NCBI GenBank assembly: GCA_964199315.1
Contig: OZ116706.1
Span: forward strand, 12,834,001 to 12,898,000
Length of the DNA: 64,000 nt
From: Orbicella franksi
Lineage: Eukaryota
Direction of reading: 5' to 3'
A program made the position numbers and the translations under genes. Within the stretch, counting starts at the first letter, position 1. Each line of letters starts with the position of its first letter. Below, one piece after another: positions 2,467 to 26,672 of the stretch. The notes below the pieces were generated by a model. That model was not told the DNA's origin. It searched no databases and saw nothing but the letters and a program-made list of their open reading frames with translations.

Positions 2467-2694
2467 TCATGCACAGGTTAATCTGATGAAGAATCCTCCT
2501 CCATCACGCTTGTTCATTGCTGTGACAACCTCTCTTCCTGGCCTAAGACGAACATCTGAAACGTTCATCACTTCCAACTTCCCAGTTTCTGGATTGAAGA
2601 CCAAGTCTTCTCTTCCATTACTTCCATTCTCTGAAATCTCCCCACTTTCCCCGACCTCGAACGCGATGGAGCTGAACCCATGTGTTTCACTCAA
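2467..2694 (-). CDS. Small protein A, candidate peptide modifier/substrate of the JAB-E2 module; 5' end unresolved
   Basis: Open frame encodes ...REDLVFNPETGKLEVMNVSDVRLRPGREVVTAMNKRDGGGFFIRLTCA*. The tracked start is TTG with an in-frame TGA just upstream. An ATG at about 2681 reads MGSAPS in the neighbouring frame and would join this frame if one G were added to either of two G4 runs. Shares a GKxEV...[VI]V[TS]...FF pattern with the ORFs at 18847 and 26400. Confidence 0.6.
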   Translation of the reverse strand: MSETHGFSSIAFEVGESGEISENGSNGREDLVFNPETGKLEVMNVSDVRLRPGREVVTAMNKRDGGGFFIRLTCA

Positions 2695-4112: not shown

Positions 4113-4799
4113 TTACATCAATGAGCAACACTGAAAGCTTTTGTTAGGCTGGTAAAGCATCAAAGGCCGTTCAGTGTTTTTTGAAGATGATTTTTGACGT
4201 ATTTCTAAGATAGAAGCTATTTCTTCATCCTTGTTCATAACCTCTGCTCCTTCCTGTAAAATCGCCAGACATTTTAAACGAAAAGGGCTCTCCTTCGGCA
4301 AGAGGTTAAAATTTCCTTTCAGCACCTTACGCTTGGTTCCAGTCTGCTCAAACAGAAAGCATCCAACGCTTACGACATCCTCTCCATGGTCAGCCTTTGG
4401 TTCAATGTTTGCAATAAACAAGAGAAAGCGTCTCAAGTTATACTGAGGCATGTTTGTCCAAACTGTTCGTTCATCTCCGCCACTGGGTTGTTTGAGACCG
4501 ATTCTGTGATGAGAATGCCACTCGCCAATGTGACAAACACCTTCCTCGCTGGTCAGATTGGAGCCGACCTTCTCCAAGTACGCCACGTCTTGGTAGAACG
4601 AGTGAGTCGTTCGCTGACAGTTTCGTCCTGGACCCAATACAAGCTGTATCACTGCGCTGTGATCGTCGGACCACAGACCGAACAAATCTCCGCCGGTCTC
4701 CAAGGTTTGATTCTTTAAAACCCAAGCACATATTTGCTTGTACTCATCAGCATAGATGGCCACTGTAAATTCTTTCTCTGTGGGCATTAGGAGACACAT
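4113..4799 (-). CDS. JAB/JAMM (MPN+) metallopeptidase paralog 1, single exon, C-terminal CaaX (CSLM)
   Basis: ETGG catalytic Glu near the N-terminus and HIGEWHSHHRIGLKQPSGGD, i.e. H-x-H-x8-S-x2-D zinc motif. The likely start is the second Met (4787, MPTEKEF), which aligns with paralog 2. Confidence 0.85.
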   Translation of the reverse strand: MCLLMPTEKEFTVAIYADEYKQICAWVLKNQTLETGGDLFGLWSDDHSAVIQLVLGPGRNCQRTTHSFYQDVAYLEKVGSNLTSEEGVCHIGEWHSHHRIGLKQPSGGDERTVWTNMPQYNLRRFLLFIANIEPKADHGEDVVSVGCFLFEQTGTKRKVLKGNFNLLPKESPFRLKCLAILQEGAEVMNKDEEIASILEIRQKSSSKNTERPLMLYQPNKSFQCCSLM

Positions 4800-7700
4800 A
4801 GGAAAAAGTTAATTTGCTTGCAGCAATTGTTTACAGAAATGAGAGTGGCCCGTGTTAACCTGGCGTGACATGGAAATGAGTTTTGTTTCTGAGAAATCGC
4901 ATGATCATGAAACAACGTTGACAAACATTTGCAACTTTGTTTTAATAGTATATCAGTGGATGATCAGTTGCACAAATCGGCCTCAAGGTGAGTTTGATGC
5001 CACGGTAAGTGGGATGTAACAAACTGTGGAAAGGTTTCTTTTAGAATAATAGCAAAAGCTGAGGAACTTTCCTCGAATAAGTATTGTAAATATGACCCTT
5101 AAATATTGCATGCAGGCAGGGGTCATTTTCCGAGAATCTCAGGAAGTATTTCAAGACAACTGTTCTAGCTCTAGTCAGACATAGCAACCGTGACAACAGA
5201 GAATCAAAACAGTTCTAAAATTCCATCAAATTTAAGTTAACAAACTTTTTTATTAGACTATTTCTGAGTTACCTTCTTCTAAGAGTTACAGAGCTGCGAA
5301 TATATTTGTATTAAAATGTACTTAGGTTTATACGTTGTGATTTATATCCTATGGTGGGAAAATTATCAACACCTTGAATAAATATATAAATACATTAAAA
5401 CTTGTTTTCAGAGTTATAGAGACACTATCCTGCAAGGGTTAGGGAGATCTACTGCTCGAATGTTACATTAGCTTCGGGTGAATTTTCTGGTTTGCTATCT
5501 ATTTGGCATACTGATAATTTTGTAGCTCCTAGTACCCGATCCATTACTGACAGATATAAACCACAATTCGTTTTAATTACGTAATATCATTCTTAACAAT
5601 TTTTAAACAAAATTCTGATTTTGTGAAGTAAGTTAGAATACAACTACGATTCTGTAGTAACATTTAGAATCTGTTTTTTAATATATCTGAATACGTGAAA
5701 CATGTTGTCCATTGTGACTGATATTTCTCTGAATGATATTTAAGTCCCCGATACAGCTTTCAAGTACCATTTTAATTCAGTTGAAATCTTAACCCTTGAT
5801 CTATATGTGAACGAAAGAAGTTGGATCGTCCTATATTCTATTCTGACATAAACATTCCTTATTTGGTATAAGCCCCTTCTCCACTTTCAATGTCGCTATC
5901 TACGGTCTTTCGTGCAATCCCTCTTCGAGTACGACGCTAAGATGGGAGAGACAAGAAGAATAGAGTGTTATTAACTTTATCTGAGAACTTTTTTCCTCAG
6001 GTTGAAGACACTGAATTTGGATTTTAATCTCTAGCAATTTCTTTGTAATGTGTTGCAAAAATGTTGCTCAATGAATCCTGCCTCATGCAAGAACGTTTTC
6101 GGCCTAGCTGACAAGAGGTCATTTTCCTAGAAAACTTGGAAGTCCGTAGTTATAAGCTACATGTTTACCTATTAAACCTCTTACAACAGTTCGTTTTCGT
6201 TTGGATATGTTTCCCTCTGTTTAAACCTGATCCCTCAGAAATTCTCACTTGCATCGGATCTAATGGCCTTGTCAGCTCAATTCAACCAATAGGCACCTTA
6301 AGCAACAGACGTTTTCGTTGACGACGGCGACGTGACGACCGATAAGAAACTGGGGCTAGAACGGCTTCAGGTTGCGGTCGCGACAGCAAGTTACCATCCT
6401 TAAAGAAGGATTTCTCGGGCTAGCATCACATCTTTTTGTTTTGTCCACTCCGTCTACGAGTTGAAGATAAACTATAGTTGAAAAATAACTCGATGGAATT
6501 AAACCTTATACTATTCATGTTTTACTAAGAGATGTACAATCATTGCGAAAAATAACGAAACAATTTAAGTTTATAAACTTTGCCTGCTTTGAAATGTCAA
6601 ACGTAAAGAGCAAAAATTATTTTATTGTAAAACGTGTATTGCTAAAGCAATTAATTGCGATTTCTAACCAAAGTTTGGATCACCGCTCATTGAGAAAAAA
6701 AAATCAGGTGTATTTTTAGACTGCCAAGATTACACACACATAGATTTTGAACAAAATCTCAGCTCACTGCGTTTTTCATTCGACACACTGATCGGCCGCT
6801 CAAATACAGGAGTTTCGCCAGCTCTTTTGGTAAAGAATCGTAAACAGCATTCTGCAAAGGATGCAATAATCTTGTATTTACAAGAAATAAAATCCAGGCG
6901 AGACAATTTGGTAGCGCGAAGTTTGCCAGCTCTTGTAAACATTAAAAATGTACATGTACACACAGTTCGAATACAAAATTCACCGAGTCGATTAAAAAAG
7001 CCTCTACGTTAAACGAAATACCAAGACGAGGGGATTGCAAAAATTAAATCAATGTTATTTCAAGCTATAGCAATCTACCGATTACACGTTGAGAAAATCT
7101 GAAAAAACTAATTATACTGAGCGGCATTACGTTGGATGAAAGCAACCTCTTCGCTGAAGGCTAGTTTGACATGCCAAAAACAATTTTTCAGTTAAGAAAA
7201 AATGAGTCCAGGAATACTTCCAGAACATTGTTTTAAGCATAAAGGCAATCATTATGCAACTTTACCTTGGTTCGGCACCAAAATAGCACAAAAGTAAGCT
7301 AAAGGGGATCAAAACAAAAGATTAAGTACTCACGTTTTCGTCGCGACGTGAAACTCCACGTTCTCACGTTCTCGACCTCAGGGCAACGTCAGGTCACAAC
7401 GTATTGTACATGCGCAGTGACATCTCGAAAGAAATGTCACGTTTCCGGTTGCCGTCGTCCGGCCGGCGACGTCTGTTGCTTAAGGTGCCTAATAACGCGC
7501 TTAAAACTATGATAACGATTCCTGGTTCCTTTTGCAGCCCAAAGTCAACTGAACGAAATTTTTCTTTGTGGGTCGTTCCAATATTTTGGTAATGAAGCTT
7601 ATGCATGTATAATTTGGCACAACATAAGTGCAAAAAATTACATACCCCATTTCATTACATCTTTGTACCAAGCAATGCGAACAGCAAAGGCAAGGACTAA

Positions 7701-7922
7701 TATCAAAGACAAAACATTGTAAAACAGTGGATTGCTCGTTCTCTCGTTACCGTCGATCGGTTGGTATGACGGAACAGCTGTCGTTCGGTCACTCAATCAG
7801 AAAGTCGGTTACAGAACATTTTTTCTGTCATTCTATTGTTAGGTCAGTCGGTCGGTAGGTAAAAAGTCGCACTTCGTGCAAACTCTGGAGTGCTTTAAGA
7901 TTGATTAGTCCTATTAGGTCCT

Positions 7923-8738
7923 TTACAACAATGCACAAAAAGGGCAGCGCCTCCTTATTTCGTTTACAATTCGAAACAGCATACCCTCTTCATTTTCGTT
8001 CTTAGTCTCTGGTTCCTCTCCGCGTTTCAACCGCTTGTTCGTTTCAACTTCCACTCTGACATCTCCTCCTTTTTGCTTGCGGGACTTTCTTGGCTTCTCA
8101 CTGCCCATCACGGGACGCTTGTTCTTCATGTTTCTTCCAGTGTGTATTTCTTTCAGAGACTTCAGTTCTTCATTCTGGTTTAGACACTCTGCTTCTTTCT
8201 CTAAAACGCTCAGACATTTTGAACGAAAGGGGCTTTCATTTGGCAGCAGGTGGAAGTTTCCTTGCAGCACCTCCAACTTCTGGTTGGTTCCCTTCACAAA
8301 TTCGAACAGAAAGCATCCGACGCTAACAGCTTCGCATTCATAGCTTTGAGTCTCAATGTTGGCAATAAACAAGAGAAAGCGGCTCAAGCCATATGTAGGC
8401 ATGTTTGTCCATACTGTTCGTTCATCTCCGCCACTTGGTCGTTTAAGACCGATTCTGTGATGGGAATGCCACTCGCCAATGTGACAAACACCTTCCTTGT
8501 TGGTCAGATTGGAGCCGACCTTCTCCAAGTACGCTACGTCTTGGTAGAACGAGTGAGCCGCTCGCCGACAGTTTCTGCCTGGACCCAAGACAAGCTGGAT
8601 CACTGCGCTGTGATCGTCGGACCACAGACCGAACAAATCTCCTCCCGTCTCCAGGCTTTGATGCTTCAAAACCCAGGCACATATTTGCTTGTACTCGTTG
8701 GCATAAATAGCCACTGTAAATTCCCTTTTTGTCGTCAT
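7923..8738 (-). CDS. JAB/JAMM (MPN+) metallopeptidase paralog 2, single exon, Lys/Arg-rich tail ending in CaaX (CALL)
   Basis: ETGG and HIGEWHSHHRIGLKRPSGGD motifs; catalytic domain closely similar to 4113-4799 in both protein and DNA. Confidence 0.85.
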   Translation of the reverse strand: MTTKREFTVAIYANEYKQICAWVLKHQSLETGGDLFGLWSDDHSAVIQLVLGPGRNCRRAAHSFYQDVAYLEKVGSNLTNKEGVCHIGEWHSHHRIGLKRPSGGDERTVWTNMPTYGLSRFLLFIANIETQSYECEAVSVGCFLFEFVKGTNQKLEVLQGNFHLLPNESPFRSKCLSVLEKEAECLNQNEELKSLKEIHTGRNMKNKRPVMGSEKPRKSRKQKGGDVRVEVETNKRLKRGEEPETKNENEEGMLFRIVNEIRRRCPFCALL

Positions 8739-10286: not shown

Positions 10287-10736
10287 ATGGGTTGGAGTTT
10301 GCAGCAACAGGCAAGACTTGGATTGGAAAAAGATGTTTTGGATACAAAGTTAAAGAACGTGACGTGGATTAACCCCACATCAGCTGGAGATACCAGAGTC
10401 GAATGGCGAGTCAACACTAACAACGGCAACAGCTACACGCTCCGTGTGTACCTCGCCAGTGACTTTCCAAACAGCTGCCCGGTACTTGTTGTAAGCTCTC
10501 CTTCTTCTCCATTGAGGAAAAAGGATGGATCTCTTCTTAACAGTACTGACGGGAGAGATCACGTTTATTCAGCGCACGATGGTTTGACGAAAATTTGTCA
10601 CTTTATCACAGATAAGTGGACGAGCGAAAATACCATATACCAAGTCTTAATGAAAGGTCGGATCTGGTTAGAAGCTTATGAGATTCACCTGCGTACCGGA
10701 GAATATCTTGACAAGTATCTGGCACACATGCAGTGA
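10287..10736 (+). CDS. Divergent E2/UBC-fold protein, 149 aa, single exon
   Basis: First in-frame ATG at 10287. Has an N-terminal RL..E helix, YTLRVYLASDFPNSCP (matches the UBC F.l.i..p..YP..PP strand/turn), DH...GLTKIC104H and WTSENTIYQVL (matches the UBC WSPALTISKVL segment). His92 and Cys104 are kept but the PN of HPN is absent. Confidence 0.7.
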   Translation: MGWSLQQQARLGLEKDVLDTKLKNVTWINPTSAGDTRVEWRVNTNNGNSYTLRVYLASDFPNSCPVLVVSSPSSPLRKKDGSLLNSTDGRDHVYSAHDGLTKICHFITDKWTSENTIYQVLMKGRIWLEAYEIHLRTGEYLDKYLAHMQ

Positions 10737-26399: not shown

Positions 26400-26672
26400 T
26401 TACCGAAAGAAGCTAGAGTTGTCTGAGCTCCCAAATTCATTTGAAGTGGTAACAATTTTCACCTTCGCCGCCTTAGAGCGAGCTTCTAGTATGGTCATCA
26501 CCTCCATCTTTCCTGGGTATTTCTCAGGGTTGTCTGAGAACTCGCTCACGGATGGACGACTCGATCGTCGACAGCTTTGTGATGCACTTCTGTTTTGAGA
26601 AAGGACGACTTCTAACGCGTTGGTGTTTAAAAAATATGGAGGATCGCGTCGTGTGCTTTGTTCTGCTCCCAT
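26400..26672 (-). CDS. Protein C, 90 aa: MGAEQS N-terminus, GKMEV...FFR C-terminus
   Basis: Shares RSSRPSVSEFS[ED]NP..Y.G and GKMEV...KIV[ST]T...FFR with protein B, also visible in the DNA. Has an MGxxxS myristoylation pattern. Confidence 0.5.
   Translation of the reverse strand: MGAEQSTRRDPPYFLNTNALEVVLSQNRSASQSCRRSSRPSVSEFSDNPEKYPGKMEVMTILEARSKAAKVKIVTTSNEFGSSDNSSFFR

Follow-up and report, generated by a model that had tools for sequence, protein, structure and literature searches.

Predicted prenyl anchors on two JAMM peptidases from a domesticated bacterial conjugation system in the coral Orbicella franksi

A stretch of 64,000 nucleotides from the genome of the coral Orbicella franksi (assembly GCA_964199315.1, contig OZ116706.1, positions 12,834,001 to 12,898,000 of the forward strand; hereafter the window, numbered from its first letter) carries two genes for JAB peptidases of the JAMM type, and our analysis of their sequences indicated that the two products very probably carry a prenyl anchor and belong to a conjugation system of bacterial origin that has been domesticated. 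In its full form, to which we assign a probability of about three in four, this reading holds that active-looking Prok-JAB isopeptidases were transferred into an ancestor of the stony corals, lost the C-terminal domain of their bacterial relatives, gained a linker that ends in a CaaX box, and are now lipidated and held at membranes. JAMM peptidases and CaaX prenylation are each well known, but we found no report of the combination. A first-pass annotation of this DNA had stated that the familiar JAMM deubiquitinases are not prenylated, and our literature search likewise returned no report of a prenylated JAMM peptidase or enzyme.

Each of the two JAB genes is a single intronless open reading frame on the minus strand. 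Paralog 1 (4113..4787) encodes 224 amino acids from the ATG at 4787; the frame is open to 4799, and the start is probably this ATG because the orthologs begin MST..EF. Its product comprises a JAMM peptidase domain, a linker of approximately 40 residues and the tail QCCSLM, and is 99% identical to a homolog of the same length (P0021). Paralog 2 (7923..8738) encodes 271 amino acids: the JAMM peptidase domain (residues 1 to approximately 200) is followed by a linker that is disordered, then by an amphipathic helix (250-264), and the protein ends in the tail RRRCPFCALL. It is 99% identical to a homolog (P0001) that shares a 90% cluster with the RefSeq protein XP_020617653.1 of Orbicella faveolata, which also has 271 amino acids and ends in CALL. 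The paralogs are 72% identical across approximately 220 residues, beyond which the alignment fails, and the linker of paralog 2 is about 85 residues long, so the divergence of the linkers in both length and sequence was as the annotation had described it.

The same was true of the tails. The C-termini read ...KSFQCCSLM in paralog 1 and ...IRRRCPFCALL in paralog 2, and the final codons are TTG ATG TAA and TTG TTG TAA, respectively. In the tail of paralog 1 (4113..4130, minus strand), a Cys at -5 (TGT, 4128-4130) adjoins the CaaX Cys (TGC, 4125-4127), which is followed by Ser (4122-4124), Leu (4119-4121), Met (4116-4118) and the stop codon TAA (4113-4115); judged by these residues, CSLM is a CaaX box of the farnesyl type with an adjoining upstream Cys. 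In the tail of paralog 2 (7923..7955, minus strand), three Arg residues (7947-7955), a Cys (7944-7946), Pro and Phe precede the CaaX Cys (TGT, 7935-7937), Ala (7932-7934), two Leu residues (7929-7931 and 7926-7928) and the stop codon TAA (7923-7925), and CALL is a predicted geranylgeranyl-type CaaX box with a basic run and a second Cys upstream.

Chance does not account for these tails. A Cys was found at position -4 in 66 of the 120 best homologs, while passages in two papers put the share of proteins that are CaaX-prenylated at 1-2% (PMC10541624, PMC11152559), so that few such tails would be expected; together with the clustering of the tails on the tree, this places the CaaX box far beyond chance. 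In a maximum-likelihood tree, the two paralogs formed sister clades (support 99) within a clade of 72 rows (support 96) whose members mostly end in CaaX, and the farnesyl-type and geranylgeranyl-type tails were strongly clustered. When the sequences were aligned from the C-terminus (right-justified), the paralog-1 clade showed Cys(-4) in 18/18 members, Cys(-5) in 17/18 and a final Met in 17/18, while in the paralog-2 clade and its relatives Cys(-4) was present in 33/33 and a final Leu in 31/33, behind a (K/R)RC-P-x-C element. The annotation had proposed the orthologs as a check of the CaaX box, and they keep Cys(-4), an X residue (M or L) specific to each clade, and the upstream Cys or basic residues; these and a nonpolar a2 are the only conserved features of the tails, while the linker drifts. 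The contrast is also seen between paralog 2 and its ortholog in a related coral (locus L001), where the linker differs by 20 nonsynonymous and 9 synonymous codon changes and the last seven codons by 0 nonsynonymous and 1 synonymous change. In one lineage the linker is more than 130 residues longer and the protein still ends in CCKCCSVM. The named carriers of the CaaX box are Orbicella, Oculina, Porites harrisoni and Montipora; these four genera cover both major lineages of stony corals. Within the fast-evolving linkers we also noted an RP[LVITM]M motif (..ERPLMLY.. in paralog 1, ..KRPVMGS.. in paralog 2), which occurs in 54 of 65 CaaX-bearing homologs at 15-114 residues from the C-terminus.

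The pattern within the last four residues is that of a prenyltransferase substrate. According to the published rule, a nonpolar a2 is combined with a permissive X, which may be M and others for farnesyltransferase and L, F, I, M or V for geranylgeranyltransferase type I (GGTase-I), and X separates the two enzymes (PMC11304957, PMC10320760). Both coral tails fit this rule, with Leu at a2 in each and X = M in paralog 1 and L in paralog 2. Across the aligned tails, a2 is L, V, I, M or T, while a1 is free to vary (S, T, V, L, A, E, I); indels occur just upstream of the CaaX Cys (CPFC, CPFRFC, CPFQFRC, CPCPFC, CPLSC), with none inside the last four residues. The fixed Cys, the tolerant a1, the nonpolar a2 and the discriminating X together form the pattern by which prenyltransferases recognise their substrates. 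The same features bear on the hypothesis that the conserved Cys tails are functional and not prenylated, serving instead for S-acylation only, metal binding (CPFC), disulfides, or docking to the E1 or E2 enzymes encoded nearby. This hypothesis draws on the Cys clusters without CaaX in distant relatives, on the CxxC spacing in paralog 2, and on C57 and C85 of the JAB domain, which are invariant in the animal family and missing in bacteria. However, the spacing of three residues between the Cys and the stop is exact in 18/18 and 33/33 clade members despite the indels just upstream, a1, a2 and X follow the pattern by which a CaaX box is recognised, the Cys pair of paralog 1 is CC and not CxxC, X is fixed in each clade, which a metal site or a disulfide would not need, and in the AlphaFold model the tail is not docked on the domain. 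We therefore regard a non-prenyl function of the tails as unlikely. A zinc-knuckle reading of CPFC was kept as a low-probability rival only. Two other readings were set aside: peroxisomal targeting by -SLM or -ALL, since the residue at -2 is not basic, as a type 1 peroxisomal targeting signal would have it; and double geranylgeranylation of CCSLM as a Rab-type CCXXX terminus, since RabGGTase requires a Rab fold presented by REP.

The catalytic site is intact. In an alignment of 52 homologs, the residues of the JAMM site (E30, H91-x-H93, S102 and D105) were invariant or nearly so, and both the catalytic motif E...HxH...S..D and the MPN fold could be recognised in the predicted proteins. The AlphaFold model (pLDDT 84) contains a confident domain from residue 1 to approximately 200, disorder at 205-248 (pLDDT 44-52), a helix at 250-264 and a free end; the tail is unpacked from the JAB domain, which makes for an accessible and flexible C-terminus. 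For the helix of the paralog 2 tail (MLFRIVNEIRRR), a hydrophobic moment of 0.71 marks a strongly amphipathic segment. Foldseek matched the JAB domain to BRCC36, Rpn11, CSN5, AMSH and Cap3 with a probability of 1.00. The Pfam model Prok-JAB (PF14464) gave 26.2 and 26.1 bits for paralogs 1 and 2, narrowly above its gathering score of 25, while the PADLOC models for JAB proteins of CBASS (anti-phage signalling systems based on cyclic oligonucleotides) matched the paralogs far better (4e-17).

Bacterial genomes were scanned, and the nearest relatives, of which the best were cyanobacterial, matched residues 2-176 with 44-47% identity. These bacterial genes lie in a conserved operon encoding a JAB (approximately 315 amino acids), an E2 (approximately 148) and an E1 (approximately 430), and the bacterial JABs carry, beyond the part matched by the coral proteins, a C-terminal domain of about 130 residues without a Cys at -4. 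This result bears out the earlier description of a bacterial-looking enzyme with a eukaryotic tag, and in the coral proteins the linker and CaaX box have taken the place of the bacterial C-terminal domain. The partners were retained. An E2-like gene lies at 10287..10736 on the plus strand (149 amino acids from the ATG at 10287) and is orthologous to the E2 gene of those bacterial operons; an intronless ThiF-type E1 of 430 amino acids lies approximately 0.4-1.7 kb to the left of window position 1 (G000:C9:12832319-12833608; L004:1501-2790, minus strand), is 97% identical to the E1 of the related coral, and is matched by the CBASS 'E1-E2' models at 4e-31. The order of the coral cluster is E2, JAB2, JAB1, small protein, E1, compared with JAB-E2-E1 in the bacterial relatives, and the E2-E1-JAB cluster recurs in a metagenome contig of Porites as well as in the related coral. 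In the literature we did not find the coral E1-E2-JAB cluster, the JABs or their tails, except that a list of anthozoan gene transfers published in 2016 includes a 'thif family protein' from bacteria (PMC4878875).

The genes are intronless and bacterial-like and their Pfam scores are marginal, features that might suggest that they are bacterial contamination or dead copies, or that their CaaX motifs arose by chance. Such an origin is extremely improbable. The contig that carries the JAB genes is chromosome-scale and belongs to an animal genome of 497 Mb, the GC content of the genes is that of their surroundings, and the window is animal DNA with approximately 39% GC, few open frames, a rhodopsin-type G protein-coupled receptor gene and retroelement fragments, the last two adjoining the genes. 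In addition, the synteny with E2 and E1 recurs in two other corals, the open frames are under purifying selection, and 600 homologs of the JAB paralogs were found, with the tail conserved. One of the more distant homologs lies in an animal contig adjoining dynein exons; in these distant animal proteins, other membrane devices stand at the end, namely CCTIL or CCVIL tails, Cys clusters and transmembrane tail-anchors.

The transcripts of paralog 2 present a more complicated picture. A splice donor (7983..7985, minus strand; GAG/GTATGC, last exon base 7985) lies 62 nucleotides before its stop codon, and contigs from a single polyA RNA library are spliced at it. Joined to acceptor A (4750..4777, minus strand; CCCACAG/AG, first exon base 4777, within the first codons of paralog 1), it gives an in-frame tandem JAB of 472 amino acids that ends in CCSLM; joined to acceptor B (5900..5936, minus strand; polypyrimidine tract and TTAG/CG, first exon base 5936), it gives a form of paralog 2 that ends in ASYSKRDCTKDRR and has no CaaX box. 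In that library the joint 7985 to 4777 had a depth of 51 and the joint 7985 to 5936 one of 159, compared with 40 for the colinear contig. Both joints use canonical GT-AG sites that are conserved in the related coral (L001), acceptor B opening a conserved intergenic exon, and both are candidates for alternative splicing. Tandem JAB models have also been deposited for Oculina (470 amino acids) and Montipora (543 and 558 amino acids). It could thus be argued that the CaaX box of paralog 2 is rarely expressed and that the main products are spliced read-through mRNAs, encoding either the JAB2-JAB1 tandem with the CCSLM of paralog 1 or the short form without CaaX. Each joint, however, is represented by one contig with 25-29 nucleotides on its shorter side, and assemblers can be misled by paralogs in tandem. 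In a second RNA library (X9) and in an 887-nucleotide contig, the sequence runs unspliced past the donor and on through the paralog 2 stop codon, contigs of two RNA libraries run colinearly through both JAB stop codons, and the RefSeq model is the colinear form of 271 amino acids. Furthermore, in many corals nothing in the C-terminal half is better conserved than the tail that follows the donor (MLFRIVNEIRRRCPFCALL), and such strong conservation of a tail that splicing skips means that the tail is translated. The annotation had named splicing to another last exon as an observation that would overturn its proposal; this was seen in part, for paralog 2 in the one library, but that paralog 2 is also made in its CaaX form follows from the colinear contigs, from the RefSeq model and from how deeply the tail is conserved. 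Predominance of the read-through products is accordingly quite unlikely. An exact search of JGI metagenome contigs for the two splice-junction sequences returned none, a blank that says little because close records may be excluded there.

Under the prenyl-anchored reading, the host prenyltransferases would lipidate the Cys at -4 in both proteins. Paralog 1 (CSLM) would be mainly farnesylated, with Cys(-5) as a likely palmitoylation site, as in the CC-aaX tails of RhoB, TC10 and UBL3; paralog 2 (CALL) would be geranylgeranylated by GGTase-I, aided by the RRR run, the second Cys and the amphipathic helix. These lipid tails would keep the peptidases at membranes, where they would act by trimming or deconjugation on what the co-inherited E1 and E2 produce; candidate substrates are small proteins encoded nearby in which the N-myristoylation start is conserved and the ends contain Gly. 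The host genome contains three prenyltransferase-beta loci (PF00432), ICMT and NMT. The annotation had described the two boxes as differing in specificity, with M favouring farnesylation and L geranylgeranylation; this is valid as a tendency and not as a strict rule, since sequences with X = M can also be used by GGTase-I (PMC11304957, PMC10320760).

Several points weigh against this reading. First, the use of X = M by GGTase-I means that the two paralogs may differ incompletely in lipid type. Second, for Rce1 the host genome gave a weak single-exon match only. Third, most of the depth leaving the paralog 2 donor in the one polyA library belongs to spliced forms that skip the CaaX box. Fourth, the Logan contigs of the RNA libraries also span intergenic DNA and thus do not give clean proof of transcription, and the raw-read polyA RNA runs X23 and X24 had zero reads on the stretch and hence could not test it. 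Finally, the analysis shows the sequence, its conservation, the fold, the bacterial origin and the presence of host enzymes, whereas lipidation, lipid type, membrane location and substrates are inferred, the substrates from gene neighbourhood only.

Among known systems, the closest parallel is Cap3, the JAB isopeptidase of Type II CBASS, together with the related BilC of Bil systems. The coral JABs share with Cap3 the Prok-JAB fold and the residues E..HxH..S..D, match the Cap3 structure 9ild weakly in both sequence and fold, and are likewise encoded beside an E2 and a ThiF-type E1, the coral pair matching the CBASS E2 and 'E1-E2' (Cap2) models. Cap3 and BilC trim or remove a Gly-linked conjugate (PMC11601596), and the same role is presumed for the coral JABs. 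The differences are also clear. Against the Cap3 equivalog model NF050170 of NCBIfam, the coral JABs scored 19.2 and 17.5 bits where the cut-off is 200, so that they are related and not equivalogs; Cap2 is an E2-E1 fusion, whereas the coral E1 and E2 are separate proteins; and Cap3 is bacterial, whereas the coral JABs are encoded by an animal and carry the linker and CaaX box in place of the bacterial C-terminal domain. Cap3 is also encoded with a CD-NTase, but none was seen among the open frames of the coral cluster, where multi-exon genes could be missed, and the cyanobacterial JAB-E2-E1 operons carry a STAND NTPase instead. This NTPase gene (NB-ARC/AAA_16; L018:4294-5730, minus strand, with equivalents in L017 and L019) is transcribed divergently from the operon.

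On the side of the tag, the parallel is with CaaX proteins of the Ras/Rho type, which likewise terminate in C-a-a-X with M or L as the last residue, have a Cys or a basic run upstream of it, and carry the motif at the end of a flexible hypervariable region; RhoB ends in ..CCKVL, Rheb in CSVM, Cdc42 in CVLL and Rac1 in a polybasic run with CLLL. In those proteins the cargo is a GTPase, while in the corals it is a metallopeptidase and prenylation is predicted. Within the ubiquitin world, a review describes USP32 as the only human deubiquitinase with a CAAX box and links the box to membrane association (PMC10485055); USP32 is a cysteine protease of the USP class, whereas the coral JABs are JAMM metallopeptidases. 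UBL3 (MUB) is geranylgeranylated and ends in CCVIL (PMC10511055), so that its tail has the C-CaaX arrangement also seen in paralog 1 (CCSLM), but it is a modifier and not a peptidase. Neither USP32 nor UBL3 is of recent bacterial origin, unlike the coral JABs.

The coral tag sits on an enzyme whose nearest relatives belong to bacterial JAB-E2-E1 operons related to anti-phage conjugation systems. It provides a clear and datable example of an animal fitting its own targeting signals to a transferred bacterial system, and it suggests that a conjugation pathway widespread in reef-building corals acts at membranes. A Cys-to-Ser change in the tail would offer a simple experimental handle on this uncharacterised pathway.

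The earlier suggestion of a myristoylated substrate finds support in one small protein and none in the E2. The small protein at 26400..26672 (minus strand) begins MGAEQST, an N-myristoylation motif; the start MG[AG][EK][QE]S[TA] was found in 18/18 of its full-length homologs (P0220-P0237), with MGxxxS kept in all 18, and the longer homologs carry FDxxTGKL, many ending in ..WLG. The family also has a conserved SSFFR element, right after which the frame in the window ends, while its relatives run approximately 50 residues longer. For the E2, which starts MGWSLQ in the window, myristoylation was rejected, since the MG start is not conserved: the protein begins MKMSWSS in the related coral and differently again in Porites. 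A second small protein, A (2467..2694, minus strand; ..LVFNPETGKLEV..KRDGGGFFIRLTCA), lies between JAB paralog 1 and the E1 and may serve as a precursor or substrate. A YNxxTGxF motif occurs in small proteins encoded after the E1 at a Bacteroidales locus (L023), which recall the FNPxTGKL small proteins of corals. We tentatively suggest, as a possibility well short of even odds, that stony corals run the whole bacterial-derived E1-E2-JAB pathway on membranes: small N-myristoylated modifiers or precursors ending in Gly would be conjugated at the membrane and then processed or removed by two JABs bearing different isoprenoids, and splicing at the conserved donor would switch among a geranylgeranyl form, a farnesyl-type tandem and an unanchored form.

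The genome contains at least eight further JAB paralogs (C9:12799932-12829239, C9:4468843-4494682 and C13:3501636-3504553), with open reading frames of 256-613 amino acids; some have tandem JAB domains within one frame and several have basic tails, and a CaaX box was seen in none of eight. Between the two JAB genes of the window, approximately 1.2 kb (6285-7514) is missing from the related-coral locus L001 and is probably an insertion, and the block beside it (6285-5820) is 85-92% identical between the two corals.

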